Shown piece after piece: positions 32,004-63,663 of a stretch of 64,000 nucleotides of DNA. Under the pieces are notes generated by a model that saw nothing but the letters and a program-made list of their open reading frames with translations, was not told where the DNA came from and ran no database searches. The DNA is taken from positions 150,230 to 214,229 of IMG/VR virus record IMGVR_UViG_3300031251_000001, one strand, 5' to 3'. Positions within the stretch are counted from its first letter, which is position 1. Each line of letters opens with the position of its first letter. The position numbers were made by a program, and so were the translations under genes.

Positions 32004-32084
32004 GTTTGTCCTTGGGATGATCCCGTTTGACTTGGCCAGGAGTAACCCCGGCCGTCGACCACATACCAGTACCCGGTCGTGGTG
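32004..32084 (-). CRISPR. putative minimal-repeat array A (ACGRCCGGG, 25-nt period)
   Basis: ACGACCGGG and ACGGCCGGG 25 nt apart, plus a degenerate AAACGGG about 25 nt further. Confidence 0.45.
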
Positions 32085-32150
32085 CGTTGTGCCGCCGAGT
32101 ACCCACCAGGAGCACCCTAAGCAGCGGTAGGCCTACCGGTGGCCCCGTGA
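32085..32150 (-). ncRNA. 66-nt structured scaffold element, copy A
   Basis: TCACGGGGCCACCGGTAGGCCTACCGCTGCTTAGGGTGCTCCTGGTGGGTACTCGGCGGCACAACG. Confidence 0.8.
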
Positions 32151-32421
32151 ACTGACTACTTGCTCTGGATGTTACAGCGGGCATCCCAGAACAGCAAGAT
32201 GACGATGGTGACGACCAGGCCAATGATGCCGGCCGTGCCCCAGTAATAGTCGAAGCTGGAGTCAAACCAGATCGCTGTCATGCAGAGCATGCAGGCTAGC
32301 ATGGAGAGCGTGAACGCTGCGTATTTGGCTGGTGGATCTGAAGGAATTGGCTTGTTAAAAGCATCGCCCAGCAACCTGCGTAGCTGGGCGTCCTTGTCGA
32401 AGTGAGGCATCGATAGCTCCG

Positions 32422-32874
32422 TCATGCGGTATTATTTTCGGGTGCGAGCCCCAGCGGAACGAAAGAGTGATCGTCAGGCGGCGGTGCAGCAACAGGGGCT
32501 GGTGCCGGCGGCTTGACGGGGGCTGCGGGTTGATTACTGAGTTTGAGTGGTGGGGTAGTCGATTGGCCTGATCGTCGGCTACCCAGGATGCCGATGCCGA
32601 CAGCTCCACCCATCGCTGCGGCCGGGCCAAAGAGCTTGAGCCCCCGCGAGAGAAGACCAGCCGTCTTGCCCAGTCCCATGCCGGTGTTGAGCAAGGCCCT
32701 GCGAAGCTGCCAGCCGGTGTAGAGTTGCTCCACGACGTCGGTGGCTTCCTTCTTCTCTTCGCCTACCTTGTCGGGCAGGGTGATGTCCTTGGGTGTGTGT
32801 TCCTGCCATCGCTTAGCCATCTCGGGCTTCTGAGAATACATCCATCTGCGCTGGGCCTTCGACTTAAACGGCAT
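32422..32874 (-). CDS. conserved phage protein
   Basis: N-terminal MPFKSKAQRRWMY...AKRWQEHTP...LPDKV motif; Gly/Pro-rich tail. Confidence 0.65.
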   Translation of the reverse strand: MPFKSKAQRRWMYSQKPEMAKRWQEHTPKDITLPDKVGEEKKEATDVVEQLYTGWQLRRALLNTGMGLGKTAGLLSRGLKLFGPAAAMGGAVGIGILGSRRSGQSTTPPLKLSNQPAAPVKPPAPAPVAAPPPDDHSFVPLGLAPENNTA

Positions 32875-32996
32875 GACATATCTCCATTTGACCCGGTACG
32901 CTTATCCTAACCCCGGCTCGTGTTGCTTAGCCATATCTAGGTCCCCCGGTGCGGCAATTCCTTCCTTCCGGATCCAATGCAAGCCCGGCGGCGATG
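32875..32996 (-). repeat. irregular CCGG(G) array B
   Basis: CCGG at 32893, 32913, 32946, 32968, 32985; spacing irregular. Confidence 0.3.
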
Positions 32997-33062
32997 CGTT
33001 GTGCCGGCGAGCGTCCACCAGGGACGCCCTAACCAGCTGTGGGCCTACCGGTGGCCCCGTGA
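32997..33062 (-). ncRNA. 66-nt scaffold element, copy B
   Basis: TCACGGGGCCACCGGTAGGCCCACAGCTGGTTAGGGCGTCCCTGGTGGACGCTCGCCGGCACAACG. Confidence 0.8.
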
Positions 33063-33466
33063 CTTCAGTCTAACAAACGGGCGGCTGCCCATGCGGTGCT
33101 GAATGAAGAATCATGTCCTCCAGTCGGAGGTTGACGTCGTCGAGGTAGACCGGGCTAAAGCGGATGCGAGCTTCCTCTTTGGTGCCGTAGCTCGACTGGA
33201 CAGGCGGGTGCTGAGAGAGTTGCTGCTCCTGAACTCGCACCCAAGGCAAACCTCGCAGCTCATCGGGGAGCTTCTCGTAGTAAAGCCGGGAAGACCACTT
33301 CACCGGCGTCAACCACACTAGCTTGCCGTTCTCCTTCGACTCAAAGGTGGCGCCCTCGTAGACCATAAAGGTGCCACTTCGGAAGGCCATGATGGCGGTC
33401 ACCGGTCCCACGCCACATCTGATCTCGGTGGCCAACCGCATGGTGGCCACCGTACGACGGTGCGGG

Positions 33467-34270
33467 TTAAGCGAGATCGCCTTGGTCCTGGTCGGAAGGA
33501 ACAGGCCCGTGATCATTGCTACCAGGCTCCCCAGCAGGCTTCGGCGGTTCGACATGAGTTGCTCTCTTTTCCAAGTCAGCCAGCACGGGAGTGGCGACAG
33601 GGTTATGGGTCTTGTTCAATCTTAACTTAGACAAGGCAGCGCTGAGGTTGGAGGTGCCCTTCTCCTGGAGGCGACGAGCCATCACCTCTTCGCTGCCGGC
33701 ATTGGGGGTGACGGTGGTTTTCTCCTGGCGAATGACTTTCACCCGTGCTCGACTCTGATCATTATCGGCTTCTTTCAGGATCTCGCCAAACGCTTCATGC
33801 GTTGCTTGCTCCTCAAAGACACTCTGTTCCTTGGCGTCCTTACGACGCTGCACACTGACAGGTCCATTCAGGGTGTAGTCGAGAAGCTCGTGACTGTGGC
33901 ATCCCTGGGTGTACTCCCCTTTAGGGAGTGGGTGATCTTTACCTGTGATCTTCAGGGTGCGGAACTGGTTCTCCATCCGCGTCATCGCTGCCCTGACGTG
34001 CTCCTTAAACTCGGCAAAGGTGCCGACAAAGGCGTTGATGTGCACATCCGTCTCATTGGTCACGATGGCCACCGGTTCCTCGCCGGCAGGCACTGCAGGA
34101 AGATCAGCGACCGGTGTGATAGACGGCACCTTCACGGTAGGCAGATAAAGCGGAATGCCGGGACCGTCACCCACCCCGCAGGTAATCCCGAAGTAGAAGA
34201 TGTGCTTGATTGGACCCTTGGGTGGCTTCACCTCGCTGAATATCTCTGGATGCTCGAAGTGATTGCTCAT
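33467..34270 (-). CDS. hypothetical protein
   Basis: GGGGAG RBS, 267 aa. Confidence 0.6.
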   Translation of the reverse strand: MSNHFEHPEIFSEVKPPKGPIKHIFYFGITCGVGDGPGIPLYLPTVKVPSITPVADLPAVPAGEEPVAIVTNETDVHINAFVGTFAEFKEHVRAAMTRMENQFRTLKITGKDHPLPKGEYTQGCHSHELLDYTLNGPVSVQRRKDAKEQSVFEEQATHEAFGEILKEADNDQSRARVKVIRQEKTTVTPNAGSEEVMARRLQEKGTSNLSAALSKLRLNKTHNPVATPVLADLEKRATHVEPPKPAGEPGSNDHGPVPSDQDQGDLA

Positions 34271-35550
34271 ACTTACTCCCCTGGTTACTGGTATCTCTCG
34301 GCCCGCTCCCGACTCATCACGTAAAGCGACTCGCTCTGCTCGGTGGCACTGACTACCACCGTAAAGCTGCAGTCCTTGACGAAGCCCGAGCTGTTGAGCA
34401 GCCCTGGCCCTTTTGTATCCACTGCGTCATGGTCTGTATAGTCGATTATCTCGACGCCGTTACAGACCATGTGCGGAGAGCAGGGGGCAGCTGAGCCGTG
34501 GTGATTCCAGGTGCTGGCGTTCTGGAAGCGGATCAGGGTGCGGTTATGATCCGACAGCACCAGCATTTCTTTAGCTACGATGCTGTACGACTGACGATTG
34601 GGCAGGTTGAGCCAGGCGCGTGGGTTCGACATCGTGAGAGCGATGTTGAGATAGTTATGCCTCTTGCCGTCCTTGCTCACGTTAGCCTTGAAGGCCCCGA
34701 TGATGACCAAGAAGATCGCTACGAAGCACATGGCGAAGAACCAGAGGATGCTGACAGCGTCCATGCTTACCCCTTGAGATGGAAGACCTTGATCAACTCC
34801 TGTCGCAGTTCTGGGTTGGCCTCCAGCACCTGGAGAGTAGTCTCCTGATCGGCAACAAGCAACTCCAACAAGGTGGTAGCCCACTTGACGACATACTCCT
34901 GCTTTGACATCAGCAGGTTGTCGAACTCGGTCGCACAGATGCCACACTGGCTGCGGTGGTCGCAGGTGGCCTTTCCACCCCCGACGAACTTGAGACCGAC
35001 GTCGGAGGGGGCCGGAGTTGACCAACTGACCGGTTGCTTAAACTGTTCAACCACCTGAACCGCCTCATTCTTGCGAGCACGACAAGGCGACTTCATCTCC
35101 GCCGGGACAATGAAATCACCACAGCGCTTGCACCTGACGCACTGACCCTGGCCTGGCGGGTGCGACACAGTACACCGCTCCATGCCCGGTTCGTGCGGTA
35201 AATTGAAAGGATGTGGTTCGCTGACGCCGAGTTCAGATTTGATTTCTTTACACTCCCATGTTTTCTTGTTCGAGTTGTAGTTGTACCAGTGCTCATGCAC
35301 CGATGCCGGCTCGTCGAAGGTGAAGAGGAGCGACACCTCTTTGGGATCCTCGATGTCGAGGTGGAAAGTAGCGGAATGAGCATGGATGCCGTGGGAGACG
35401 GCAGCGTCCACGTTAATAAATGATGACGTGGAGGAATGGTCCGTAACCCTAGACAGGGTACGCACGGTGACTCGTACCTTCTTGGTGTCGGGCCAGATCG
35501 GAAAATGGAAGAAGTAACGGCTGAGTGGCATGGTGGCTCCTGTGGAGGTG

Positions 35551-35889
35551 TTACTTATGATCTTTGACCAGCTGTTCACACTGCTGGGCATAGGTCTTGC
35601 CAATGAACTGCTGCTGGCGTAGAAATCCGAGCTTGGCTCTCGATGTCATCTTCTCCCAGAGCCGGGCTATCATGGGCCTGATCTTATCCAGGCCGACGCC
35701 AGATCGGAAGCGGAAACGACCCTCGGACAGGTCCCCCGTCTCCTCCATGACTCCACCAAGCTCTTCGGGCAGCTGATCACCACCGTCACAATCGATGTCA
35801 GAGTACATATTGACGATGCGTTCAGCGGTGAACTTGCTAGGTACGTTATTAACCCCTTGTGAGGGGTAAGGCGAGGCGTAGATAGGCAT
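35551..35889 (-). CDS. hypothetical protein
   Basis: Start MPIYASPY after AGGAG. Confidence 0.6.
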   Translation of the reverse strand: MPIYASPYPSQGVNNVPSKFTAERIVNMYSDIDCDGGDQLPEELGGVMEETGDLSEGRFRFRSGVGLDKIRPMIARLWEKMTSRAKLGFLRQQQFIGKTYAQQCEQLVKDHK

Positions 35890-35903
35890 GCTTGCTCCTG
35901 GTT

Positions 35904-35919
35904 CAAAATACGTATTTTG
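35904..35919. promoter_or_regulatory. 16-bp palindrome, copy 5
   Basis: Exact; directly at the end of array C. Confidence 0.85.
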
Positions 35920-36079
35920 GGTTCGTGTCTCCGCCCCTGCTTCGTGCTGGTGGACTCCACCTGCTGTGACAAGCCCGACTTGACTCCCTGCTACGAGGTA
36001 GCCAGATCGGCTCACCTGTTGCGAGCATTGGCATCTCCGCCCCTGCCCGTGCGGGAAGAGCATCAACACCCTGCTCGCT
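35920..36079 (-). CRISPR. putative minimal-repeat array C ((RG)CAGG x6)
   Basis: Plus-strand cctg at 36070, 36042, 36015, 35987, 35960, 35936 (periods 28, 27, 28, 27, 24). Confidence 0.6.
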
Positions 36080-36145
36080 CGTTGTGCCAGCGACCCGCCA
36101 CCAGGGCGAACCTAACCAGCTGTAGGCCTAGCAGAGGCCCCGTGA
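36080..36145 (-). ncRNA. 66-nt scaffold element, copy C
   Basis: TCACGGGGCCTCTGCTAGGCCTACAGCTGGTTAGGTTCGCCCTGGTGGCGGGTCGCTGGCACAACG. Confidence 0.8.
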
Positions 36146-36150
36146 ATCGA

Positions 36151-36627
36151 TCAATGACTCGGTGTACGATGCTTCAGCTCAGCCCAGACGTTAGCCGGGG
36201 TCCAGTGGCTCTGTTCCCCTGTCTGATCGAGCGTAGCAATCAACTCGTCCAAGTCGTACCAGGCCCAGCCGTCGCACTTGTCCGGCTCCTTGTTGACCGG
36301 CTCTCCGCCGATGTACTCGGCATACACCCAGTAGGTGATGTGGTTGACTCGCGGTCGATGATCGCTGACGCCCAGGATAGCAGGACAAAACTCAATGTCC
36401 AGATCAGTGCAGACCTGGAGGCCTGTCTCTTCGAGGACCTCACGGTGAACAGCATCCATGATGGTCTCACCATTCTCGACATGCCCACCCGGCAGAGCGA
36501 TGCAGCCTGGTCCGCGTTTGCACGTCATGGAGCGACGGCCGGCCAGGAACTTGCCCTCTTTGTGAATCAAGATGCCCACCCCGGAAGTGGGTGGGCGACC
36601 AAGCAGAACGGTCTTCTCGTCGGTCAT
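36151..36627 (-). CDS. Nudix hydrolase (NUDT15/MutT-like)
   Basis: Nudix box GGHVENGETIMDAVHREVLEETGL; EPVNKEPDKCDGWAW. Confidence 0.92.
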   Translation of the reverse strand: MTDEKTVLLGRPPTSGVGILIHKEGKFLAGRRSMTCKRGPGCIALPGGHVENGETIMDAVHREVLEETGLQVCTDLDIEFCPAILGVSDHRPRVNHITYWVYAEYIGGEPVNKEPDKCDGWAWYDLDELIATLDQTGEQSHWTPANVWAELKHRTPSH

Positions 36628-39907: not shown

Positions 39908-41641
39908 TTATTCCTCGGGTTGATCAGCTGCGTCCCTCTTCTCCTTGAGGATCTTCACCATCGCCTCCAGCTGCGACAGTGTATCGGCGTCACGGTCGGC
40001 CGTCCGCAGCATGCGCTTAGTGAGAGCACGTTTAGCGTAAAGCACCGTCACCGGCAGACGAGCCATAGCCTGGCCCACCGCTGCTGGACCACGAGAACGG
40101 AAGATGTCGTGGAACTTCTCGTAGAACTCCATGCTGTGCACATGCGTCCCGGTGTCAGCGTTGTCGTGACAGTGCTCATGGGCCAGCAGATGGACCAGGC
40201 TGCTGACGCCATCGACGTCGAACTGGAGCCTTCTCAGGTAGTCCCGGCCGATAGCAATGTAGCTCTCGCCGTCCGTCCAGCCCTCGGCCACCGGGGAGCG
40301 ACCGATGCAGAGCTTACGTCGCTTCTCCCAGCTGTTGCGTTCGCGTTTGATGATCAACCAGTAGGCAACATGAGCCAGCTTGAGCCAGATCCCCTCCAGG
40401 GCGGTGAGGTTCTTCTCGGCGATCAAGTCATAGCTCTCGCTGATCGACTTGATCAGCGACTGGAGACTACAGATCTTGTAGCTGGAACCCAGGTTCATCC
40501 TGTACGATTCCTTCCCTGTCCTGATCTTCCACATGACATCAAGGAACTTACTCAACGACATGTTGAACTTGCGCAGGGTCTCCTCGGCCACCACGAACGC
40601 CAGCTTCTGCTGAAACAGCTTATCAGCCCTGCGGTCACCCAGCGGAGCACTGGTGAGGCGTTCTTTGTACTGGTAGGAACATTGAAAGAACTGCTTGATG
40701 GAATAGTGACGACCTGAGCAAGCGGTGATGATCTTGAGATCAACAGCACCCGCCGGCACCTCATCCTGAGCGATCAAGTCGATGAGGCGTTGGCGTTCGT
40801 CATCGTTCATCGACTCCCTCTTGAGGAGTTCCTTCTGGGCGATCTGGTCGACGAACGGTTTGATCTTCCGCCACACCTTGCAGGACGATTGGACGTCGTT
40901 CCTGGCGAAGTTCACCTCCAGCTGCTGACGGCTGACGATGACGCCGCCTACGCCGAAGTGAGAGCCGGCCATGTCCAGTGTGTGCACGCCCAGGTTGTAA
41001 AGAGCCAGGGTGCCGGCACCACGGGTCAGGCGGATGTAGGCCTCATCGGTGACGAAGTCCCACTTTTCTTTAGCGGGGTCGACGTTGATCTTGGTGCCGT
41101 TGTAGACAACAACACACTGGGCGTACTTGGCCCAGCTGCGGATCAACCGCTCAGTCTCGGCAAAGTCCGAGGGCTTCATCCGCTCGTAGAGCTTGATCTC
41201 GATGCGGCAGCCATCCTTCTCAGGCAGGCCACTCTTGAGGTCGTAGTCCAGACCATCGTCGGCGATGTTGACGTTCATCTCGAATGGGCCGGTACGCCAG
41301 CGGTTGCGACCATAGGAGAACATCTGCCCACGGCCCATGCGGAAGGTGCCGTAGATCTTCTTCTCTTTCTCGGTGTGGGGCTGACCGAAGGTCTCAAAGA
41401 AGTCCTCGATCTGCTTGCGTTCGGCGATGCCGATACCGTTGTCGTCGATGAGGACGCTCTCAGGGGTGACGGTGATGGAGCACTTGGTGGCTTTGGCGTC
41501 CACCGAGTTCATGACCCCTTCGAGCACGGCCTTGGCCAGAGTGCCGGCCTGCCGCTTGATAACGTCCAGGAGGAGCTTCGGGTGCATCCCGAAGCGACGG
41601 CGCTCGATGTTGTCGGTACGTGCGAGTGCGGAAACGGACAT
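39908..41641 (-). CDS. GHKL (HATPase_c/Hsp90-like) ATPase protein
   Basis: EGVMNSVDA, IDDNGIG, YGTFRMGRG, GCRIEI; HEHCH near the C-terminus. Confidence 0.85.
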   Translation of the reverse strand: MSVSALARTDNIERRRFGMHPKLLLDVIKRQAGTLAKAVLEGVMNSVDAKATKCSITVTPESVLIDDNGIGIAERKQIEDFFETFGQPHTEKEKKIYGTFRMGRGQMFSYGRNRWRTGPFEMNVNIADDGLDYDLKSGLPEKDGCRIEIKLYERMKPSDFAETERLIRSWAKYAQCVVVYNGTKINVDPAKEKWDFVTDEAYIRLTRGAGTLALYNLGVHTLDMAGSHFGVGGVIVSRQQLEVNFARNDVQSSCKVWRKIKPFVDQIAQKELLKRESMNDDERQRLIDLIAQDEVPAGAVDLKIITACSGRHYSIKQFFQCSYQYKERLTSAPLGDRRADKLFQQKLAFVVAEETLRKFNMSLSKFLDVMWKIRTGKESYRMNLGSSYKICSLQSLIKSISESYDLIAEKNLTALEGIWLKLAHVAYWLIIKRERNSWEKRRKLCIGRSPVAEGWTDGESYIAIGRDYLRRLQFDVDGVSSLVHLLAHEHCHDNADTGTHVHSMEFYEKFHDIFRSRGPAAVGQAMARLPVTVLYAKRALTKRMLRTADRDADTLSQLEAMVKILKEKRDAADQPEE

Positions 41642-52435: not shown

Positions 52436-52439
52436 GTGT

Positions 52440-52530
52440 GTTTCCTTCGGGGCTACGGTGTCCTGACTCGTTGATGTGCGACGAGCCTTACCTGACTCGC
52501 CGCTATTGGGAACGAACTCCCTGACAGATG
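52440..52530 (-). CRISPR. putative minimal-repeat array D (CGAGTCAGG, 29-nt period)
   Basis: Plus-strand cctgac at 52462, 52491, 52520; 20-nt spacers. Confidence 0.65.
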
Positions 52531-52596
52531 CGTTGTGCCGGCGACCACCCACCAGGAGTGCCCTGACCGGCTGTAGGCGTGTCAGACGCCCCGTGA
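52531..52596 (-). ncRNA. 66-nt scaffold element, copy D
   Basis: TCACGGGGCGTCTGACACGCCTACAGCCGGTCAGGGCACTCCTGGTGGGTGGTCGCCGGCACAACG. Confidence 0.8.
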
Positions 52597-52938: not shown

Positions 52939-52954
52939 CAAAATACGTATTTTG
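52939..52954. promoter_or_regulatory. 16-bp palindrome, copy 6
   Basis: Exact, intergenic. Confidence 0.85.
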
Positions 52955-54344: not shown

Positions 54345-57161
54345 CTAGCGGACGGGTGCTGTCGGCTGCTGACCGGTCAGGGCCTGGTTGATCTTGGCCG
54401 GAGCTTGAGCAGCACCAGCGTTCCCGAGGAAGTTGCGGGCAGCGGTCAGGAGCCCCATGCCTGCCATGCCGGCGATGCCACCGACCATCCCGCGACCCAG
54501 GCCACGCCCGAACGAGAAGTTGGGAGCTGCGGGCCGAGTCATCGACATGTTGGTGTTGAGGTAGGAGCGGGGCCGGGGAGCGGTGGGTTGACCATCCATG
54601 AGGCCGGCACGCTTGGGGACGCCTGCAGCAGGAGCAGCAGCCTGTTGATCAGATCCACCCAGGTACGACTTCATGGCCATGCCGCCACCCAGGAGACCAG
54701 CACTGGCAGTGCCGAGGCCTGCGACATTATCCCCCACAGTCGGAGCAGTGGGCGTGGGCTGGGAACCGAAGGCACGCTGAGCCGGAGCGGGAGCACGTGG
54801 GGCACTGGGCACCGAAGCACCGACCGGCACGTGTGACATGGAGGTGGGTAGTGCCTGGGCCATCGGTGCTGCGGGTCGAGGCACGATGGTCTGCTTGCTC
54901 ATGTTCTTCATGCCACGCATCATCTGCCCTGGGGCTTTGAGGATGCCACTGAGGATGCCAGCGTGTTTGGTGACGGGCTTATCGTCTTCCTCTTCCTTCT
55001 CGTGCTTGGGCTTGCTGCTGTCGGTCAGGCGATGCAGGCCGTAACCAGCCAAACCGCCAACCAGGCCACCACCGAGCATACCTAAGCCACGGTGGTCAGA
55101 CGGCGAGGCCATCAGGCCACCCATTTCACCCAAGGTACCACCAATGCCAGTAAAGATAGCTCCGCGTGAGCCACTGTTGACCTGGCGTGAATGTTCTTTC
55201 TTGTCGCCACCTGAGTCGGTAGCACCGACCACGCCTGGATTGATGACGCCAGCTGGCCCCATCATCAAGCGACGGATGATACGTGAGCTCTTGTCTCCCT
55301 GATCAACTTCCTTCTTGTTTCGCTGCCACGAGGGCTTACCACCGACCATGTACTGGCCGAACTTGTCGCCACCACGCATACCCAGTAGCCCACCAGTGAT
55401 ACCACCGACCGAAGCACCAATGCCGGCACCGGCTTCCTCGTGACCCAGTGCACGACCAATACCAGCGCCAGTTGCAGCTCCCAACCCGAGTCCGGTGGCA
55501 CCGCCCAAGCCGGCACCGAGGAGACCGTATCCAGTACGCTGCGTACCACGCACGGCGCCTTCGTAACGGTGACCCTTGGGTGAAGTGGCAGCACCAATGA
55601 TCGCAGGTAGACTAGCGAGGCTTAACCCACCCACCCCACCAGCGATACCGCCCGCTATGGCGGGATCGATAGCCCGCTTACTCCAGCGCACCTGTCCATC
55701 CACGGCCCCCTTCTTGCCTACAGGCGGTGCGGATTCCCACGGTGCCGGCGCAATGTTAGGCTTGGGCTGAACAGGAGCAATAGGGTAGTCAGCGCCACCG
55801 CCAACCCCAGAGGGTGGCGCGAATTGCATGAGATCATTAGGGTCTTTCGGCTTGCTGAACTGTCTCTGCAGGAAGTCACCCACAGACTTCTTGGGCTGGT
55901 CCCGCACAGTGTCCTTCAGTGATTTGAAGCCACTGGGTTGTGCGGCATAGTTACCCTTGATGGTTTCAGCCGCATGATGCACACCCTCATTCACCTCAGC
56001 GTCGTTCTGTTGTTGCTTACTCGTCAAATACCTGTGCAGCAAGTAGGTAGAACCAATACCAGCAACAGCACTAAGCACAGGGAGTGAACGACGAAGCAGA
56101 CCCGGCTTCTTGGGTTGTACGTCGACGGCCAACTTGCTCCAACGCACCTGTCCATCCACGGCTACTTTGTGTGTCAACGGATTACTCCCAATGGACGAGT
56201 CGTCAGCTTCGACTTCCTCGTGGTCTTCTGGATCAGTCTTGTCTTCACTCTGATTGGCGTCATCCAGCAGCTTGTTGAGTGGATGCGTCTTGGTGTCGGG
56301 CGTCATGGTATCGAGATGTTCACCGTGCCGCAGAGGCGAAGGCGGCGGTGGTGGAGGAGGCGGCACAGGTGGTGAACCAGGAGGCGGCGGATTGCCGTCA
56401 CCAGCGAAAGGCTGAGGAGGAGGCGGGCCGGCGGGTGCTCCACCCTGCTGCGAAGGATCGGTCTGTTGCCCAGGAGGGGGCGGTTGTCCACCGGGTGCGT
56501 TCGGTGCTCCTGGGGGGCCGGCGGGGGCACCGGGGGATGGAGGAGCACCGAACGCAGGTCCAGTGGGAAGTCCAGCTGCAGCGGCCTGCTGTCCTGGGGG
56601 CAGGTCACCTGACTGCGGTGGCTGCTGAATGGGGCCGGTCGGTGAGGCAGGTTGAGCTCCGACGTCACCAGCCGGCAGCGCTGCCCTCTTGCGTCGCGAG
56701 CGTGCTTGATGTGCCTCCACCCCGATCCGCGTGATGGGAATGCCGTTCAACTGGATCGGCGTGTACCGTAAGTCTCGGGCCGTGACAACCTTTTGCACCA
56801 AGTCGGCAGCACTGTGCACCGCCTCCTGGGACGAGGCGTCAACGTCTCCTATGGAGATGGCTTGTCCCGGCTGCTCCCCGGATGTCGTGCTGTCAGGGTC
56901 AGACCCGAGCAACAGGTTGCTGGTAACCCCCGCTCGCTTGTCCCGTCTGTGGGACCAAGTCGTGCGCAGAGTGTCAATGGCTCCCGTGAGCTCGGGAGTT
57001 AACCGTGGATTAGCCATAAATGATGCTGCCTTGCTCTGGGACCGTGCGAAGCGGTTCAGCTGTTCCTTCGTGGTACGAGCGGGTTTCGCAATGGACGACA
57101 ACTGTTTGTCGGCCTCAGAGCGTACCAGGTTTGGTGCGATTTGAGCGTCTGTGGATTGCAT
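54345..57161 (-). CDS. 938-aa low-complexity Pro/Gly-rich protein with glycine-zipper segments
   Basis: Poly-Pro tract, GxxxG helices, internal repeat AVDGQVRWSK x2. Confidence 0.75.
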   Translation of the reverse strand: MQSTDAQIAPNLVRSEADKQLSSIAKPARTTKEQLNRFARSQSKAASFMANPRLTPELTGAIDTLRTTWSHRRDKRAGVTSNLLLGSDPDSTTSGEQPGQAISIGDVDASSQEAVHSAADLVQKVVTARDLRYTPIQLNGIPITRIGVEAHQARSRRKRAALPAGDVGAQPASPTGPIQQPPQSGDLPPGQQAAAAGLPTGPAFGAPPSPGAPAGPPGAPNAPGGQPPPPGQQTDPSQQGGAPAGPPPPQPFAGDGNPPPPGSPPVPPPPPPPPSPLRHGEHLDTMTPDTKTHPLNKLLDDANQSEDKTDPEDHEEVEADDSSIGSNPLTHKVAVDGQVRWSKLAVDVQPKKPGLLRRSLPVLSAVAGIGSTYLLHRYLTSKQQQNDAEVNEGVHHAAETIKGNYAAQPSGFKSLKDTVRDQPKKSVGDFLQRQFSKPKDPNDLMQFAPPSGVGGGADYPIAPVQPKPNIAPAPWESAPPVGKKGAVDGQVRWSKRAIDPAIAGGIAGGVGGLSLASLPAIIGAATSPKGHRYEGAVRGTQRTGYGLLGAGLGGATGLGLGAATGAGIGRALGHEEAGAGIGASVGGITGGLLGMRGGDKFGQYMVGGKPSWQRNKKEVDQGDKSSRIIRRLMMGPAGVINPGVVGATDSGGDKKEHSRQVNSGSRGAIFTGIGGTLGEMGGLMASPSDHRGLGMLGGGLVGGLAGYGLHRLTDSSKPKHEKEEEDDKPVTKHAGILSGILKAPGQMMRGMKNMSKQTIVPRPAAPMAQALPTSMSHVPVGASVPSAPRAPAPAQRAFGSQPTPTAPTVGDNVAGLGTASAGLLGGGMAMKSYLGGSDQQAAAPAAGVPKRAGLMDGQPTAPRPRSYLNTNMSMTRPAAPNFSFGRGLGRGMVGGIAGMAGMGLLTAARNFLGNAGAAQAPAKINQALTGQQPTAPVR

Positions 57162-57167
57162 AGTGGT

Positions 57168-57176: not shown

Positions 57177-57200
57177 CAGACGCTGGGGTTGGTGGTGGGA

Positions 57201-57512
57201 TCAAAGCGAAGGCAGGCAAGCGTGGGCGACGTCGGAGGTGAAGAGCTCTCCTGGGCCGTTGCCTTCGGTGTCACGAGAAGCGTAGAGATGGACGTCGTTG
57301 TCGAGGATGATGACCAGAGGACGATTATCCCAGCGCATGTCGGTTGCCTCCTTCTTGGTCATGTACCTGACGTGCTTGATGGTGCGATCACGCAGGAGAT
57401 CAGTAGCAACAGCGGTCCAGTAGGTTTCACGCTGCTTAGCGTTGGAGAGGTCGTATTGCTTTCTGTGGTGAGTAACGATGGATGGCATGAGGTTGTTCCT
57501 GAGAGTTGACAT
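57201..57512 (-). CDS. hypothetical protein
   Basis: ASRDTEGNGPGELF motif; follows array E. Confidence 0.6.
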   Translation of the reverse strand: MSTLRNNLMPSIVTHHRKQYDLSNAKQRETYWTAVATDLLRDRTIKHVRYMTKKEATDMRWDNRPLVIILDNDVHLYASRDTEGNGPGELFTSDVAHACLPSL

Positions 57513-57642
57513 ACTGGTATTGCGTGCCCGTCACGACAGATCTGGCAAGGTGCCCGTCCGGAGGACGATACGGTACATGCCCGCCCTTGAAAGGTCGGGG
57601 CATGGACCCGTCCTCGGAGTGACGGCCAATACCGTCCCTGTT
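57513..57642 (-). CRISPR. putative minimal-repeat array E (GRCGGGCA, 26-27-nt period)
   Basis: Plus-strand cccg at 57527, 57553, 57580, 57607 and cctg at 57637. Confidence 0.6.
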
Positions 57643-57708
57643 CGTTGTGCCGACGCGTGCCCACCAGGAGCACGCTAATCAGCTGTAGGCCTGACGGAGG
57701 CCCCGTGT
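57643..57708 (-). ncRNA. 66-nt scaffold element, copy E
   Basis: ACACGGGGCCTCCGTCAGGCCTACAGCTGATTAGCGTGCTCCTGGTGGGCACGCGTCGGCACAACG. Confidence 0.8.
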
Positions 57709-58529
57709 GCTTGATTGTTAGAACCTTGGTCTAGGCAGTTCCTTTGATTCTTCCACAGTCGGCTCAGGTGTGGGTTGGTGCCGGGCCTCCAGGGCGGAAA
57801 TGCGACTTGATAGCGACTCATTCACGATCGCTTGCTCGGAGATCTTGTTCTCGATGCGGATGTGTTGAATGGTGTGAATGACCAGGTAACCCATGGCGAA
57901 CCAGAAGATGAAATCAAACATGTGTTCCTTAGTTGATACTGGGTTTACCTGCCACACGGCGTAACACCGTGGTCAGGGCCTCATTGGTGATGTCGGCTCG
58001 GTCGGGGTCAGTCACCTCGCGGCAACCATCCTCGACGATAACGATGTCATGCTCGCAATGGTCAGCGAGGAAGCGAAAGATCGGGGCAGTCTCGCCGCCA
58101 TCGCCCATGACCGAGAACTCGGCCCCGCTGATGTGCAGCAAGTAGGCCAGAGAATCCGACTCAGCCAGTACCCGACGCAGGAACTCTTCGCTCACGCGAC
58201 TGGACTGGGGCGAGTCGAGATTGCAGGTCTTGCAGCGGTAACTCATGTCGACAGACATAGTGACTCCTCACAGTTCGCCACGTGATTGCAACAGTTTGAT
58301 CATGGCGGGATGAATCCAGAACACCTTGTTGCATTGGCAGGTGATGGCGATCCGTGTACCTACGGGCAAATGGGCCAACTCGTCGTTGCCGCCACGATCA
58401 GTCTCCGCCTTGTCGATGGTAGTCATGCGGTGATCTGCCGTGCTGAGCGTACGACATAGGGAGTGCCACTGACTGCGGACATAGCCCATGAACTTGGTGT
58501 TCGATAGTGTTTCTTTCATCGAGTCTCCT

Positions 58530-58612
58530 TAATTAGCCTGTTCGCCATTTCCCATCCAGCAATCCGGTCAACTGGTCCCATCCGGATTCAGGTTATGCCA
58601 CTCCCACCCGAT
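58530..58612 (-). CRISPR. putative minimal-repeat array G (GGRTGGGA, 26-nt period)
   Basis: Plus-strand ccca at 58551, 58577, 58603; 18-nt spacers. Confidence 0.65.
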
Positions 58613-58678
58613 CGTTGTGTCAACGCCAATCCACCAGGGATGAGCTCATTGACGGTAGGCGTGATGGACGCCCCGTAG
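58613..58678 (-). ncRNA. 66-nt scaffold element, copy G
   Basis: CTACGGGGCGTCCATCACGCCTACCGTCAATGAGCTCATCCCTGGTGGATTGGCGTTGACACAACG. Confidence 0.8.
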
Positions 58679-58738
58679 CCGTGAGGCCTCATGCGGTGTA
58701 AGCTGATCGCAGGCAATAATGCCACCAGAGGACCTCGC

Positions 58739-60325
58739 ATGCTAGATCAGAAACGAGTTGTGCTACCAGGTAGCGACCGCAAACCCTTAGAGGGTGCCAC
58801 GGTTGCAGCCGGCCACCGTCATAGTGAAAGGTTTGAGGTCACCGTGCGTCTGCGACGCAAGGCACCAATCAAACCCGAAGGAGCCCAACACGAGGATGTC
58901 CTTCCCGCTGATCGCAAGTATATGACCTGTGATCAGTATCTTGCACAGCATGGTGCCAAGCAGGAAGATGTTGATTTGGTGACAGCGTTTGCCAAGTTGT
59001 ACGGTCTGACGGTAGTCGATGTCAGCCTGGCACGCCGTAGTGTGTTCTTGTCGGGTTGTACCGAGCAGTTTGAGAAGGCCTTCAGTACCACGATCGCTGA
59101 CATGGAGCACCCTGGTGGCGGTTATCGCGGCCGAACTGGTCCACTCACAATCCCCGAGAGCCTGTCAGGCATCGTGGAAGCTGTGTTGGGCATCGACAAC
59201 CGCAAGATCGCCAAGCCCCACTTCCAGATGGCTAAGAGGCTGCAGGGTGCGACACCACACGCCAGCCACTCTTCCTACAATCCCAACGATGTCGCCAAGG
59301 CGTACAACTTCCCCACCGGGGTAGATGGTACGGGACAGTGCATTGCCTTGATCGAGCTCGGTGGCGGTTATCGTCTGCCTGACATCACCGCCTACTTCAC
59401 CAAGCTGGGACTGAAGGTGCCCACCGTGAAGACCGTGCGCGTTGATGGCGGCACCAACTCACCGACCACCGCCGATGGCGCTGACGGTGAAGTGATGCTG
59501 GATATCGAAGTAGCGGCAGCAGTGGCACCAGGTGCCACCATTGTCGTCTACTTTGCTCCCAACACCGATAAGGGCTTCCTTGACGCGATCACCATGGCCG
59601 CTCACGACACGGTCAACAAGCCTTCGGTCATCTCCATCAGCTGGGGTGGACCGGAAGCACAGTGGACCGTGCAGGCTCGCGTCGCCATGGATCAGGCGTT
59701 CATCTCAGCCTCCGTGCTGGGTCTGACCATCTGTGTGGCTGGCGGCGACAATGGTTCGACCGATGGCATGACTGACGGCAAGAACCACGTGGACTTCCCC
59801 GGCTCGAGCCCACACGCTCTTTGCTGCGGCGGAACACGACTGGGAATCGGCAGCTCCGGGCAAATCAGCTCGGAATCTGTGTGGAACGATAATCCCACAC
59901 AGAGCGCCACCGGTGGCGGTATCAGTGATGCCTTCAACGTGCCGGTCTATCAGAAGTCCGCTAACATCCCTCCCTCGGCTAATCCCAACAAGAAGTCGGG
60001 ACGCGGATGTCCGGATGTGGCCGGCAATGCTGATCCTTCCTCGGGTTACAACGTCCGCGTGGACGGTGGAAACTATGTGATTGGCGGCACCAGTGCGGTT
60101 GCTCCGCTCTATGCCGGACTGGTAGCACTCTTAAACCAGAAGCTGGGACACCGTTGCGGCTACCTCCACCCGCTGCTGTATGGCAGCGTGCAGGGCAAGG
60201 GAGCCTTCAACGACATCACGTCTGGTAACAACGGTGCTTACCACGCCCAAAAGGGCTGGGATTGCTGCACAGGGCTGGGCACACCCAACGGGCAGGCCCT
60301 CTATATTGCCCTGGGCGGCAAATAG
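58739..60325 (+). CDS. S53 family peptidase (kumamolisin/sedolisin-like) with propeptide
   Basis: Triad motifs GEVMLDIE (ExxxD) and GGTSAVAP, oxyanion GDNG, SISWG, C-terminal GWDCCTGLGTP. Confidence 0.95.
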   Translation: MLDQKRVVLPGSDRKPLEGATVAAGHRHSERFEVTVRLRRKAPIKPEGAQHEDVLPADRKYMTCDQYLAQHGAKQEDVDLVTAFAKLYGLTVVDVSLARRSVFLSGCTEQFEKAFSTTIADMEHPGGGYRGRTGPLTIPESLSGIVEAVLGIDNRKIAKPHFQMAKRLQGATPHASHSSYNPNDVAKAYNFPTGVDGTGQCIALIELGGGYRLPDITAYFTKLGLKVPTVKTVRVDGGTNSPTTADGADGEVMLDIEVAAAVAPGATIVVYFAPNTDKGFLDAITMAAHDTVNKPSVISISWGGPEAQWTVQARVAMDQAFISASVLGLTICVAGGDNGSTDGMTDGKNHVDFPGSSPHALCCGGTRLGIGSSGQISSESVWNDNPTQSATGGGISDAFNVPVYQKSANIPPSANPNKKSGRGCPDVAGNADPSSGYNVRVDGGNYVIGGTSAVAPLYAGLVALLNQKLGHRCGYLHPLLYGSVQGKGAFNDITSGNNGAYHAQKGWDCCTGLGTPNGQALYIALGGK

Positions 60326-60327
60326 TC

Positions 60328-60343
60328 CAAAATACGTATTTTG
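60328..60343. promoter_or_regulatory. 16-bp palindrome, copy 7 (20 bp perfect here)
   Basis: TCCAAAATACGTATTTTGGA between convergent stop codons. Confidence 0.85.
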
Positions 60344-60349
60344 GATGGA

Positions 60350-62200
60350 TTAACTGGAAGCCAAGGCCTTCTCGGGGGCCTTGGCTTTCTTGATGCCTAA
60401 CAGCTTATCTTCCTGATCCTGTAGCTTGGCAAGCTGCTCATTACTTATCTTGAGCAGATTCCTCATCTGTTGATGGATGAGAGTGAAATGACGAGCACCA
60501 CCCGCGACAGGGCAGTCGATGTAGACGTCCTTACCCTTCTTGCCGTCGTAGCGTCTGAGCTTCTCGTGGGCGGCGTGCAGCTTCTTATTGAACTTCTGTG
60601 CCTTAACGACCAAGTTGCGGATCTTGATCACGTTATGCAGATCGTAGAGGGTGGCTGTCTCTTCGCTCAGATCGGTGTAGGCCTTGCCAGTTAAAACACA
60701 GTCATCCTCAAACCAAGAATGCCTGTCGCCTTGATCGATGAGATCGTACCAGATCAGGTAGTGGAAGACCGGGCCTTCCTCTTTGAGGTGGACGATCAGA
60801 TCCATGGGCGTGCCGTTGATGAAAGCAGCCGAATCAGGTTCCTCCTCCCTGGCCCCCAGGTAGAACGGCAAGCGATGCCCATTCCATGTGATGCTGGAAG
60901 CAGCGAGCAGGTAGACGCTGTTACCTGGTGCTGGTTTCCCTGACGGTTCGGTCACTTGGATATCCACCAGCTCTTGAGCCTTCTTGGTGTCAAGAAAGTT
61001 TCTCATGATGGGGTGCTGCGGGCCGGCGTAGAACTCCTCGGTGGTGTCAAGGAACTCCTCCCAGTTAAGCAGCGTGTTGATGAGACCATCATCTACCACT
61101 GACTGGCCACCCTGAACGTAGAGATCCATCTCCTCTTCCCTGGATTTGATACCCTCGTCCTGGACATAGTCAAAGCTGCAGTTCTCGTAGTCCTGGGAAC
61201 TGTAATGCCTCCAACCCAGGCTGCGTACCAGGGCCACGCGATGACGATTGAGCCACTGATCCAACTCCGTCATATCTTTACGTTCGTTATGAGTGAACAG
61301 CTCCGGTAGTGTCGTCATCACGGGTCGCAACCTGGCCACGTAAGCAGACCATCGCGACTTGAAGTAGTGCAATACGTAGTCACGCAGCGCTGTGAGGATC
61401 TGCTGCATGGCTGATTTGAGTTGGGGTGAGTCGATGAGGATGGAACGATCGGGGAGCTTGGGCCGGACACCCGATTCGGGATCGACAAACCAGATGAAGT
61501 TTTTCAGTTCCTCATCGATGGGCAGAGTTTTTGCCTCTTTAAGGTACTCATCTGCCTTACCGCTGCGAAGGTAACGATAGTCCCATACCGGCTCTGGATG
61601 GTTAATGAAGTAAGGACTTGACCTTAAACCCAGCAGCACACGCCCCACCGGCGTCATGAGATCTACCAGGAGATCACCATCCATGCGTTGTGTGATCAGG
61701 TTGCCGTTAAGGGTGAGGGTGAAAGGGTACAGGGCGCGAGCAGTGCTGATGGCGTGGTCCAGCTCCTTCTTCTTGCTGGTGGACAGTATCAGCTTGAGGT
61801 AGAAACCAGGAACGCCTTCTTCCTCAATAGGTTGAATGTCTTTGTCGATCCAGTTCTTGGTGTCAAACTTGACCTTCCAGTTCTTGGAGCGGACAGTCAC
61901 CTCGGTGAACAGATCAGGGTTGAGGAGGCTGAAGAAGCCCATGCCGGCAGGAGAGGTGACCTTGGTGCGATCCCAGCCGGTCTCACCGCCCTCCACGAGT
62001 AGCTGAGGATCTTCACAGCCACGACCGTCGTCCAGGATGGTCAAGACGGTACATTCGGGATCGGTGATGACCGTGACGTTCTTGGCGCCGGCACGGTAGC
62101 AGTTCTGCAGGATCTCAGCCAGGGTGGCATCGAAGCCACCAAAGAAACGAGTCAGCTCAGGCAGGATCGCCTGGCTGACGTGAGCACGAATCGTCTTCAT
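60350..62200 (-). CDS. GHKL (HATPase_c) ATPase protein
   Basis: EILQNCYRAGA, ILDDGRG, AGMGFFSL, GFYLKL. Confidence 0.85.
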   Translation of the reverse strand: MKTIRAHVSQAILPELTRFFGGFDATLAEILQNCYRAGAKNVTVITDPECTVLTILDDGRGCEDPQLLVEGGETGWDRTKVTSPAGMGFFSLLNPDLFTEVTVRSKNWKVKFDTKNWIDKDIQPIEEEGVPGFYLKLILSTSKKKELDHAISTARALYPFTLTLNGNLITQRMDGDLLVDLMTPVGRVLLGLRSSPYFINHPEPVWDYRYLRSGKADEYLKEAKTLPIDEELKNFIWFVDPESGVRPKLPDRSILIDSPQLKSAMQQILTALRDYVLHYFKSRWSAYVARLRPVMTTLPELFTHNERKDMTELDQWLNRHRVALVRSLGWRHYSSQDYENCSFDYVQDEGIKSREEEMDLYVQGGQSVVDDGLINTLLNWEEFLDTTEEFYAGPQHPIMRNFLDTKKAQELVDIQVTEPSGKPAPGNSVYLLAASSITWNGHRLPFYLGAREEEPDSAAFINGTPMDLIVHLKEEGPVFHYLIWYDLIDQGDRHSWFEDDCVLTGKAYTDLSEETATLYDLHNVIKIRNLVVKAQKFNKKLHAAHEKLRRYDGKKGKDVYIDCPVAGGARHFTLIHQQMRNLLKISNEQLAKLQDQEDKLLGIKKAKAPEKALASS

Positions 62201-62233
62201 TCAGTTACTCCCTAGTTCGGTGTACAAGTAGTG

Positions 62234-63529
62234 TTATTCGCCTGCAATTACAGGCTCTTCGACGGCCTTGCCCATGTACAGGAACTCGACCCCGGCCTCA
62301 GTGCAATGGCGCTCAAGTTCCCCCTTGAGCTGGAACCACGGGAAGCGGGGCACGAAGTTCTGGATCGAGTCGTCGTACTTAATGGAAGAGACATCGTTCC
62401 GCAGGGCGAACTGCACGACCTGGCAGCAGGTCTGCAGGATAAAGGTTTTGATACGGTTGTTGTGCTTCCTGGCCCAAAGATCGGCGTCACGCAGGAGACG
62501 CTCCTTCTTGGCCTTGGGGATGCGCATCTCGTGTTTGAGGTCCTGGGACTGGCGGTGCTGCCGGCGTCCGTACTGATAGCACCAGTCACGCACACGGTCA
62601 GCATTAACGACCCAGGGCTCCTCACGGTCCTGGAGGATGCCATAGAGGAGCGACTCCTCAGTAGTGCTGATGTTGAAGAAGCGCTCCTTCTCCAGCTTCT
62701 CCCTGGTCTTGCGTGGGGCATTGACCACGAGCTTGCACATCAGTCGATTGACGGGTCGGGAGGGCTTATTGCCTTGCGGTATATTACTCCTGTGATCACC
62801 CTCGTTGGCTCGCATCTGGTAGAGAGCGATCTCATTGCACTCAGCCTCTCCGTCGAGCACCTGCTGCAGCACTCCGAGCTGACGCCAGTATTGCGACTTA
62901 GAACCTGACAACCGCAGCGTGGTGTGCTCCTTCTGCCCCATCAGACGCATCTTGACACCGAAGGCTTCAGGGAGCTTTTCTTTAGCGGGTAACTTCACCA
63001 GCTTGCTGTCATTGGTGGAGTAAGGCTGCGGGTAGCGGAACGACGGCAGTGATTGCTTGCCGGTCCAGATCACCTCATAGCGGGCAGCGGCATAGATCTT
63101 CTGCACCAGGTTCTCGGCGATGGCCCGCATGGCAGGGTGGATCCGGAAACTAGCCGTCTCCTGGTAGAGATAAGGCCTATCCCAGGTGGGCATTTTCGCC
63201 ATCGTGCCATCACGAACGATGTCACGGAGGAACATCTGGCGGATGAGGAAGTTCTTGAGCCTGGTCGCTTCGGCGAACGAGTCGCGAAGCAAGGGCCGCA
63301 GGTCTTCCCAAGTGATGCCGTCAGGTGCAGTGACCGGGATGGTTATCGCAAAAGTGCGATAATCCCTCTTGTAGCACTTGTTGCAGATGAGCTTATCACC
63401 CTTGAGCTTCCAACCCTTGGGTATTTTAGCAGTGCCGTCTTTGCCCGGCTTGGACTTGCCCTTGTTGACGCAGCCCTCATTGGCGCAATACGTCTCCATC
63501 AGATTCGGTTTGGTTTCGACGATTGACAT
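62234..63529 (-). CDS. Cas12f/TnpB-like protein, predicted nuclease-dead and C-terminally truncated
   Basis: Colinear Cas12f-like blocks: TGKQSLPSFRYPQP, VLQQVLDGE, RFFNISTT (at RuvC-I GIDLG), bridge helix to QVVQFALRNDVSSIKYDD (RuvC-II), FPWFQLKGELERHCTEAGVEF; then stop. AAGGAG RBS. Confidence 0.72.
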   Translation of the reverse strand: MSIVETKPNLMETYCANEGCVNKGKSKPGKDGTAKIPKGWKLKGDKLICNKCYKRDYRTFAITIPVTAPDGITWEDLRPLLRDSFAEATRLKNFLIRQMFLRDIVRDGTMAKMPTWDRPYLYQETASFRIHPAMRAIAENLVQKIYAAARYEVIWTGKQSLPSFRYPQPYSTNDSKLVKLPAKEKLPEAFGVKMRLMGQKEHTTLRLSGSKSQYWRQLGVLQQVLDGEAECNEIALYQMRANEGDHRSNIPQGNKPSRPVNRLMCKLVVNAPRKTREKLEKERFFNISTTEESLLYGILQDREEPWVVNADRVRDWCYQYGRRQHRQSQDLKHEMRIPKAKKERLLRDADLWARKHNNRIKTFILQTCCQVVQFALRNDVSSIKYDDSIQNFVPRFPWFQLKGELERHCTEAGVEFLYMGKAVEEPVIAGE

Positions 63530-63597
63530 AAAAACTCCTTATTGGGAAGCGAAGACTCACCCCATCACGAAGAAAGCCACTGCACTATGCAGCGGCT

Positions 63598-63663
63598 CGT
63601 TGTACCGGCGAGTGTCCACCAGGGACACCCTAACCAGTGGTAGGCGGGATGGACGCCCCTTAG
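63598..63663 (-). ncRNA. 66-nt scaffold element, copy F (directly upstream of the Cas12f-like gene)
   Basis: CTAAGGGGCGTCCATCCCGCCTACCACTGGTTAGGGTGTCCCTGGTGGACACTCGCCGGTACAACG. Confidence 0.8.

Follow-up and report, generated by a model that had tools for sequence, protein, structure and literature searches.

The last 64 kb of the 214,229-bp virus record IMGVR_UViG_3300031251_000001 (positions 150,230 to 214,229, hereafter the window) encode a nuclease-dead homologue of the RNA-guided protein Cas12f (dCas12f) and seven copies of a structured RNA element, the scaffold, which is present ten times in this jumbo phage genome (working label G000). Each scaffold and the leader behind it form a cassette, in which short tags complementary to the hairpin loop of the same scaffold are separated by unique segments. 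In relatives, a homologous RNA lies between the dCas12f gene and an ordinary CRISPR array. We propose, with a probability of about 60%, that the cassettes are natural single-guide units or mini-arrays for a DNA-binding dCas12f that alters transcription. An earlier note, made from the letters of the window, had drawn attention to several of these features; our analysis bears out most of it and corrects the pairing partner that it had assigned to the short repeats.

A nuclease-dead Cas12f homologue from a large, mostly phage-borne clade

The phage genome contains a single dCas12f gene:

62234..63529, minus strand: nuclease-dead, C-terminally truncated Cas12f homologue of 431 aa with an N-terminal Cys4 zinc ribbon (profile, AlphaFold2 and Foldseek)

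This open reading frame (ORF) has no match in Pfam or PHROG. A profile built from the 431-aa protein and five homologues (six sequences) was used to search the PDB with hmmsearch and gave OsCas12f as best match (9nzq_A, E = 4e-16; Cas12f chains span E = 4e-16 to 2e-5), with profile positions 105-381 aligned to residues 80-368 of the 433 residues of the chain, followed by AsCas12f, Un1-type Cas12f and one chain annotated as TnpB. Modelling with AlphaFold2 from the single sequence gave a predicted local distance difference test score (pLDDT) of 35, and the model based on a 100-sequence alignment (pLDDT 93.6) was used instead. The fold comparison suggested in the earlier note, carried out on this model with Foldseek, returned AsCas12f at the top (E = 9e-17), the natural dCas12f 9n9c at 2.5e-13 and TnpB at about 1e-7. 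Profile and structure comparison both recover the WED-REC-RuvC fold of the Cas12f/TnpB superfamily.

The same note had described the ORF as lacking an intact RuvC site, and the alignments agree. The aspartate of the Cas12f VDMG strand (RuvC-I) aligns to Ser288 in the hidden Markov model alignment, and this column is occupied by R, K, T or S, never by an acidic residue, among 100 family members. The RuvC-II glutamate aligns to Asp386 (D in 72% of the 100 members), and the chain terminates about 45 residues past this position, so that both the zinc finger and RuvC-III are absent. The RuvC D-E-D triad combined with a zinc finger or target-nucleic-acid-binding insert, by which active type V nucleases are recognized, is therefore not found. 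Judged from its sequence and predicted structure, the 431-aa protein is a nuclease-dead Cas12f homologue.

A scan of 1.84 billion cluster representatives yielded a family of at least 692 clusters (defined at 50% identity) at E < 1e-30, nearly all of 390-440 aa, in which the N-terminal Cys4 ribbon is conserved. The nearest member shares 37% identity with the jumbo-phage protein. The contigs encoding homologues are mostly phage-like, with terminase, portal and capsid genes.

Directly downstream of the dCas12f gene, after a gap of 33 nt, lies one of two genes for large proteins with a GHKL/MORC-type HATPase_c_3 domain (60350-62200, minus strand; the other is at 39908-41641, minus strand).

A structured RNA scaffold present in ten copies

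The scaffold is an element of about 65 nt that forms a two-hairpin, covarying RNA. The earlier note had placed one copy 68 nt upstream of the ATG of the Cas12f-like ORF and six others in intergenic sites; repeat search and motif scan confirm that the window contains seven intergenic copies, each encoded on the minus (gene) strand. When these seven were used to build a covariance model (R1), the 214-kb genome yielded ten copies, scoring 63-95 bits, and no further match above noise, the three copies beyond the window being at genome positions 5.1, 122.6 and 147.0 kb. The copies in the window are:

32085..32149, minus strand: scaffold with P1 loop ACCGGUA (R1 92.3 bits)
32997..33061, minus strand: scaffold with P1 loop ACCGGUA (R1 92.8 bits)
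36080..36144, minus strand: scaffold with P1 loop UCUGCUA (R1 88.5 bits)
52531..52595, minus strand: scaffold with P1 loop UCUGACA (R1 92.4 bits)
57643..57707, minus strand: scaffold with P1 loop UCCGUCA (R1 95.5 bits)
58613..58677, minus strand: scaffold with P1 loop UCCAUCA; it lies in a divergent gap, and a plus-strand gene starts 3 nt away (R1 83.5 bits)
63598..63662, minus strand: scaffold with P1 loop UCCAUCC, 68 nt upstream of the dCas12f ATG at 63529 (R1 90 bits, alignment and fold)

The consensus fold begins with P1, a 5-bp hairpin with a 7-nt loop, followed by a UAC linker; next come the 6-bp P2 and, past a 2-nt bulge, the 8-bp P3, whose loop is an invariant CUGGU, and then an invariant ACAACG tail. 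Compensatory double changes occur in 10 of the 19 consensus pairs, and the many G-U pairs mean that only the minus-strand RNA fits the fold. The cassettes matched no Rfam family, either at gathering score or at E up to 10 (including C4 antisense RNA, ribozymes and riboswitches).

Seven of the ten elements start at the stop codon of the upstream gene, and a non-coding stretch of 27-215 nt, ending in a Shine-Dalgarno (SD) sequence and ATG, lies behind every copy. The genes downstream of the cassettes are unrelated to one another; they include ThyX, a PAP2 phosphatase, dCas12f itself and six unknowns.

The plus-strand gene next to the scaffold at 58613..58677 (58691-60325, plus strand), among the few on this strand, codes for a sedolisin/kumamolisin-like protease that includes a pro-domain. 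A gap of 3 nt separates the start codon of this gene from the 83-nt aligned scaffold region, so that transcription of this cassette must start inside the protease gene or run antisense to it.

Short tags behind each scaffold match its own P1 loop

Periodic short repeats behind the scaffolds had also been reported in the earlier note. The leaders of the window are organized as follows:

32004..32084, minus strand: leader with two CCGGG tags (cores 32073-32076, 32048-32051), upstream of the PAP2 phosphatase gene
32875..32996, minus strand: mini-array of five CCGG(G) tags (cores 32985-32988, 32968-32971, 32946-32949, 32913-32916, 32893-32896)
35890..36079, minus strand: mini-array of five AGCAGG tags and one ACAGG (cores 36071-36074, 36043-36046, 35988-35991, 35961-35964, 35937-35940), then a 16-bp palindrome (35904-35919), SD and ATG
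52436..52530, minus strand: mini-array of three GUCAGG tags exactly 29 nt apart (cores 52521-52524, 52492-52495, 52463-52466)
57489..57642, minus strand: mini-array of GACGGG(CAC) tags (cores 57632-57635, 57608-57611, 57554-57557, 57528-57531) with one degenerate GGCGGG between
58520..58612, minus strand: mini-array of GGAUGGGA-type tags (cores 58578-58581, 58552-58555, 58545-58548)
63530..63597, minus strand: leader with a terminator-like hairpin (63576-63593) and one GAUGGG tag (core 63562-63565), then SD and ATG

In ascending position, these cassettes thus contain 2, 5, 5, 3, 4, 3 and 1 cores of 4 nt. Tags are 4-9 nt long and the unique segments between them 16-24 nt. The distance between neighbouring tags is 20-30 nt in most cases and roughly doubles where the intervening tag is degenerate; a guide of Cas12f/TnpB length together with its tag would fit the former spacing. 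A single tag is present in one cassette, and in another the first tag is degenerate.

The commonest 5-mers of the leaders are cassette-specific (GCAGG, GUCAG, GACGG, CCGGG, GCGGG, GAUGG) and correspond to the reverse complement of the P1 loop of their own cassette, e.g., UCUGCUA/AGCAGG, UCCGUCA/GACGG, UCUGACA/GUCAG and UCCAUCA/GAUGG for loop and tag. Loop nucleotides 2-5 are complementary to the cassette's own short repeats in 10/10 jumbo-phage cassettes. Strict Watson-Crick complements of nucleotides 2-5 occur 34 times in 1.16 kb of leader, compared to 13.8 +/- 3.1 in dinucleotide shuffles (maximum 24), and complements of nucleotides 2-6 occur 23 times, compared to 4.3 +/- 1.9. Each leader contains its own motif at a rate of 2.93 per 100 nt, against 0.32 for the motifs of other cassettes, cross-cassette matches being about 10-20 times rarer; none of 20,000 permutations of the loops among cassettes attained the observed totals. 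These statistics establish, at the level of sequence, that each loop has been selected to pair with several downstream tags.

As the earlier note had stated, the cores are CAGG, CGGG or UGGG. Its proposal that they pair with the invariant CCUG of the P3 loop is not favoured by our analysis, since the repeats covary with the variable P1 loop and relatives lack that P3 loop sequence. Although CCUG remains formally able to pair, we rejected it as the main contact: it never varies, relatives do without it and the variable part of the tag tracks the P1 loop.

The first tag begins 4-7 nt past the scaffold tail in eight of the ten cassettes, a fixed position that implies a pseudoknot between loop and tail region. 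The nested minimum free energy fold of the cassette at 52436-52595 pairs the P1 loop with the first tag and gives up P1.

In relatives the scaffold lies between the dCas12f gene and a CRISPR array

The earlier note had recommended a covariance search with the seven window copies. On contigs encoding dCas12f homologues, R1 matches were found on the strand of the homologue, just 3′ of its stop codon and followed by a CRISPR array:

L031: R1 match of 31.4 bits (E = 2e-8), 17 nt past the stop codon
L033: R1 match of 22.9 bits, overlapping the stop codon, with a 9-repeat array behind
L045: R1 match of 21.2 bits, just past the homologue's stop codon
L044: R1 match of 17.6 bits, just past the homologue's stop codon
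L039: R1 match of 17.1 bits, just past the homologue's stop codon
L006: R1 match of 14.4 bits, just past the homologue's stop codon
L038 and L036: R1 matches of 12-13 bits, just past the homologue's stop codon
L040, L041, L043, L008 and L010: weaker R1 matches at the same position

The arrays of relatives have 36-37-nt repeats with an internal hairpin, a period of 71-76 nt, 35-nt spacers and 2 to 14 repeats (9 in L033, 14 in L041, 8 in L046, 6 in L044 and 5 in L008). Adaptation genes are absent from their loci. When 14 elements from relatives were aligned, the same P1, P2-P3 and AACG architecture was found, with covariation in 12 of 15 pairs. A covariance model built from the relatives' elements alone (R2) recovered the jumbo-phage copies in the reciprocal search: its top eight matches on the 214-kb genome are 8 of the 10 copies (E from 1e-6 to 0.1). 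The location of the homologous element between gene and array and these reciprocal matches identify the scaffold as the clade's RNA resembling a trans-activating CRISPR RNA (tracrRNA) or scoutRNA, in line with the tracr/scout-like scaffold that the earlier note had assigned to each cassette.

The loop rule is shared as well. Of 11 canonical loci, 10 have the complement of P1 loop nucleotides 2-5 near the 3′ end of the repeat (offset -5 or -6), involving five different loop/repeat pairs (CUGC/GCAG, CCGC/GCGG, CCGU/ACGG, CCGA/UCGG and CCAG/CUGG), and none of 20,000 permutations attained this match. The clade RNA is therefore predicted to be a helper of the tracrRNA/scoutRNA type, i.e., a structured RNA beside the effector gene or array with a segment complementary to the repeat. 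Since the jumbo-phage tags follow the same rule, they correspond to the 3′ tag of the repeat without its hairpin of about 30 nt, as anticipated in the earlier note, in which the repeats were considered reduced to little more than a pairing core. No canonical array (direct repeats of about 23-40 nt with unique spacers) and no adaptation genes were found in the 214-kb genome.

Whole viral records of relatives usually contain one scaffold. The complete 61-kb phage G005 has three: behind the first are two repeats of full length and a third that has decayed, behind the second a GUCGCGUCGGGAG motif that recurs, and behind the third four UCGG tags, SD and ATG. The jumbo phage is the extreme case seen, with ten dispersed cassettes and no canonical array. 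One extra scaffold match in record G004 lies within a coding sequence and was discarded. Exact-pattern scans for jumbo-type elements in IMG/VR and metagenome contigs gave chance matches only, some of them coding and none near a homologue.

The kinship of gene, scaffold and array bears on two alternatives. In the first, the scaffold would be a structured RNA independent of dCas12f, such as a terminator, ribozyme, riboswitch or same-transcript antisense RNA. Its location after stop codons would suit this, and the pairing of a loop with a downstream site resembles the c4 RNA of P1 and the CI RNA of P4, same-transcript antisense RNAs whose loop pairs with a downstream site. However, the Rfam search found none of these families, C4 included, and more than ten independent phage loci link the homologous element to dCas12f genes, which makes this explanation hardly credible. 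HDV (hepatitis delta virus)-like, pistol and twister ribozymes, riboswitches, put-like antiterminators and N4-type hairpin promoters were also inspected by eye, and were rejected for their mismatched architecture and the link to dCas12f.

The second alternative considers the cassettes as non-functional relics, a unit of tracrRNA and half-repeat having spread by duplication or recombination and the tags being decaying CRISPR repeats. The missing canonical array and adaptation genes fit such a scenario, as do the cassette with a single tag and the one with a degenerate first tag. It is nevertheless very unlikely: all helices are kept in ten copies through compensatory changes, and each loop is still matched to several tags, a correspondence that decay would break.

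Two further features were noted around the relatives' genes. A leader motif, GGGGATAT, lies between scaffold tail and first repeat (e.g., L033:11360-11390), with a small GC hairpin and then GGCC behind it. This motif may belong to a longer tracr-like RNA or serve as the array promoter. In addition, CsrA-family genes occur near two homologues (L031:171-377, L033:257-457): the closest dCas12f homologue has its start overlapped by one, and the phage contig of a second homologue contains the other. A CsrA-type reader of the GG-rich tags was considered on account of these two genes and rejected, none being present in the jumbo phage.

Proposed mechanism and alternatives

We propose that the jumbo phage uses one dCas12f of a clade whose usual locus order is gene, tracr/scout-like RNA of about 80 nt and CRISPR array. 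The clade RNA would consist of the 5-bp P1 with its 7-nt loop, a long bulged P2/P3 hairpin and an A(N)AACG tail, and nucleotides 2-5 of the P1 loop (up to nucleotides 2-7 in the jumbo phage) would serve as anti-repeat, pairing with the last nucleotides of the repeat just 5′ of the spacer. In the jumbo phage, the canonical array would have been replaced by copies of the scaffold at ten intergenic sites on the gene strand, the units behind each scaffold retaining the pairing tag of the repeat (4-9 nt) and 16-24 unique nucleotides. Scaffold, tag and the next 20 nt or so could fold via the loop-tag pseudoknot into a natural single-guide RNA; later tags would alternate in pairing with the same loop, the additional tag-segment units forming a minimal array. 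Cassette RNAs would be co-transcribed with neighbouring genes and loaded into dCas12f, and the resulting ribonucleoprotein would bind matching DNA without cutting it and change transcription.

Several observations weigh against this proposal. The jumbo-phage units lack the repeat hairpin of about 30 nt that relatives keep, and every cassette is a 5′ leader ending at a ribosome-binding site, which would suit a cis-regulatory role too. The enrichment of tags in G005 is marginal (P about 0.06). The unique segments of the cassettes have no significant match in the rest of the phage genome; when two mini-spacers were searched in 185,000 species genomes, the 20-mer was absent and the 18-mer occurred at chance level. 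The array spacers of relatives identified no protospacer among GenBank phages and their own records. Finally, the sequencing runs containing the phage are all of rhizosphere-metagenome DNA, with no RNA run among them.

Two isolated sequence resemblances concern possible targets. Two units of one cassette (window 36043-36030 and 35937-35925) open with the same GGCGGAGA, and the 16-nt stretch of tag plus GGCGGAGA perfectly matches the antisense strand of a gene of the structural region (G000:75808-75823; E = 0.008, which is about chance over all queries). In a relative, the array spacer at L008:4936-4970 resembles part of a tRNA gene, namely its T-arm and acceptor end (core GGTTCAAATCC), a similarity that hints at host tRNA genes as targets.

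The placement of the cassettes would also suit action in cis as mRNA leaders. The scaffold would then be bound by dCas12f or a host factor, and alternative loop-tag pairings would remodel the 5′ untranslated region and control the translation, stability or read-through of the downstream gene, the unique segments not being guides. This explanation accommodates the start of cassettes at or near the upstream stop codon in 7/10 cases and the way they run up to the SD/ATG of the following same-strand gene, the failure of the unique segments to give targets, and the ease with which thermodynamic folding already yields a loop-tag helix; a loop-tag code private to each cassette is also what cis action would predict. 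However, the same scaffold precedes ordinary CRISPR arrays with 35-nt spacers in relatives and not a gene leader, the tags do not overlap ribosome-binding sites, and their regular spacing of about 20-30 nt has no obvious role in a leader. We therefore regard cis action as rather unlikely, if the most serious of the alternatives.

Cassettes directly upstream of genes could also be self-targeting switches. In this case, the guides would pair with their own encoding DNA, the GG of the tag serving as target-adjacent motif (TAM), and dCas12f would be positioned upstream of ten genes, either as a roadblock (delayed shut-off) or, with a small sigma factor of the phage, as an RNA-guided promoter. The lack of any other match in the phage genome is compatible with this, and a characterized dCas12f requires just a 5′-G TAM and recruits an extracytoplasmic function (ECF) sigma factor (PMC13472631). 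The only sigma-70-type gene of the phage (G000:26732-27358, minus strand, corresponding to L024:6732-7358, outside the window) has a 208-aa product of the sigma-70 family in which regions 2 and 4 are present, together with a weak ECF-type match. On the other hand, this gene is about 27 kb from the dCas12f gene and not in an operon with it, no sigma factor is found in the neighbourhoods of relatives, and since the canonical arrays of relatives have this GG at their end, self-targeting would be expected of them too. Self-targeting as a whole appears unlikely to us, its sigma-recruitment variant being no more than conceivable.

The proposal of guide units acting with dCas12f can be extended to a genome-wide RNA-guided control network, made of ten leaders each with a scaffold, a private loop-tag address of 4-7 nt and one to several guides of about 20 nt. 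Since a gene follows immediately behind every cassette, the DNA acted upon may be that of the cassettes themselves; the guides would then serve as timed roadblocks or, in combination with the phage sigma factor, as promoters specified by RNA. We advance this network as a tentative scheme that has, at present, the odds against it; if true, CRISPR-type guide units can function even when no more than the anti-repeat pairing core is left of the repeat.

Other features of the phage genome

The ends of the 214,229-bp record overlap, indicating that the assembly is complete and permuted. The record comes from a rhizosphere metagenome, almost all genes are on the minus strand, and no close relatives of the phage were found among GenBank phages or IMG/VR. 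A 1,674-aa protein (G000:102635-107659, minus strand, corresponding to L028:2635-7659) matches beta-subunit families of phage multisubunit RNA polymerases, so that the phage probably transcribes part of its own genome with its own polymerase. The only Rfam match at gathering score is a tRNA-Met (CAU) gene (window 28423-28495, minus strand). A 41-nt direct repeat (85% identity; window 55666-55706 and 56122-56162) lies within the 938-aa ORF at 54345-57161, which suggests an internal protein repeat.

A perfect 16-bp palindrome, CAAAATACGTATTTTG, is present in 22 copies across the phage genome. Its sites in the window are:

35904-35919, 52939-52954 and 60328-60343: CAAAATACGTATTTTG palindromes
30447, 21936, 14990 and 8244: starts of further copies of the 16-mer

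Most copies are located 3-7 nt past a stop codon and 14-24 nt ahead of the next start, and one is in a 24-nt convergent gap. This palindrome is a candidate phage-specific terminator, promoter or operator and would belong to a class of elements distinct from the cassettes.

Significance and comparison with known systems

That dead TnpB and Cas12f proteins serve as natural RNA-guided transcription factors has been shown recently, and few clades have been studied. The present work defines a large, mostly phage-borne clade of dead Cas12f together with its helper RNA, offers a simple anti-repeat rule (P1 loop nucleotides 2-5 pair with the repeat end) and identifies one phage in which the array is reduced to 4-9-nt tags and the scaffold multiplied tenfold. 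If functional, these units set a lower bound on what is required of a CRISPR repeat and explain why standard CRISPR finders overlook such systems. They would also provide a compact multiplex guide format (scaffold plus tag-guide units of about 20-30 nt) with built-in orthogonal addressing, and a natural snapshot of the transition from array to single guide that was proposed from phylogeny.

Short structured helper RNAs that form a few base pairs with the repeat of the CRISPR RNA (crRNA) are known as scoutRNAs in Cas12c and Cas12d systems. The clade RNA resembles them in contacting the crRNA repeat by few base pairs, but the protein families are unrelated, and the contact proposed here is made by pairing of a hairpin loop, with a sequence that varies between cassettes. 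ScoutRNA is mentioned in PMC9723637 and 10.1101/2023.12.12.571249.

Type V-F CRISPR-Cas12f systems with tracrRNA are close in two respects: solved Cas12f chains are nearest in fold and profile, and the relatives present the order gene, non-coding RNA and array with 36-37-nt repeats, with no adaptation genes. In contrast, the jumbo-phage protein has a dead RuvC and neither zinc finger nor RuvC-III, the helper RNA of the clade would pair with just 4-7 repeat nucleotides via a hairpin loop, and the jumbo phage has ten dispersed scaffold-led units instead of an array.

Nuclease-dead Cas12f has been found to direct RNA-guided transcription with sigmaE, and the authors consider a separate array-associated dead cluster to be a probable repressor (Hoffmann et al., Nature 2026, PMC13472631). 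As in our case, the dCas12f of the sigmaE system is truncated at its C-terminus and retains the fold, a repeat-spacer unit being the presumed origin of its single guide RNAs. Unlike it, neither the jumbo phage nor the relatives have an operonic sigma or helix-turn-helix partner: no operonic rpoE (ECF sigma) was found, and no neighbour in nine relatives' loci has a sigma Pfam match. The setting is a phage here and a Bacteroidota chromosome there. Multi-tag units and a loop-tag code were not described for the systems of that study.

The nuclease-dead TnpB-like proteins known as TldR are RNA-guided repressors (Wiegand et al., 10.1101/2023.11.30.569447). They too are small dead RuvC proteins carried by mobile elements, with presumed RNA-guided binding to DNA and regulation of transcription. 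TldR proteins are, however, derived from TnpB and have one omega-RNA-like guide 3′ of the gene, whereas the jumbo-phage protein scores nearer to Cas12f than to TnpB, its gene is separated from the next ORF by just 33 nt, and its relatives keep CRISPR arrays.

A phylogenetic route from array to guide RNA has been proposed, with loss of RuvC-III from Cas12f, shrinkage of the array to a half repeat by the tracrRNA, fusion into an omega-like RNA and duplication for several sites (Altae-Tran et al., PNAS 2023, PMC10691335). The loss of RuvC-III, array shrinkage, fusion of tracrRNA and half repeat and guide-RNA duplication would all have counterparts in the jumbo phage. That scenario was put forward for an RpoE-associated clade, whereas here the residual repeat is 4-9 nt, each scaffold can carry several tag-segment units, and the copies are spread over a 214-kb phage genome and not in a local array.

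Finally, virus-borne mini-arrays, solitary repeat units and RNA anti-CRISPRs (review PMC11656645) are likewise phage-encoded, very short CRISPR-derived RNA elements without Cas1/2. They differ in having full-length repeats of the host type and in acting with or against host Cas proteins, whereas the jumbo phage supplies both the effector and the putative helper RNA.

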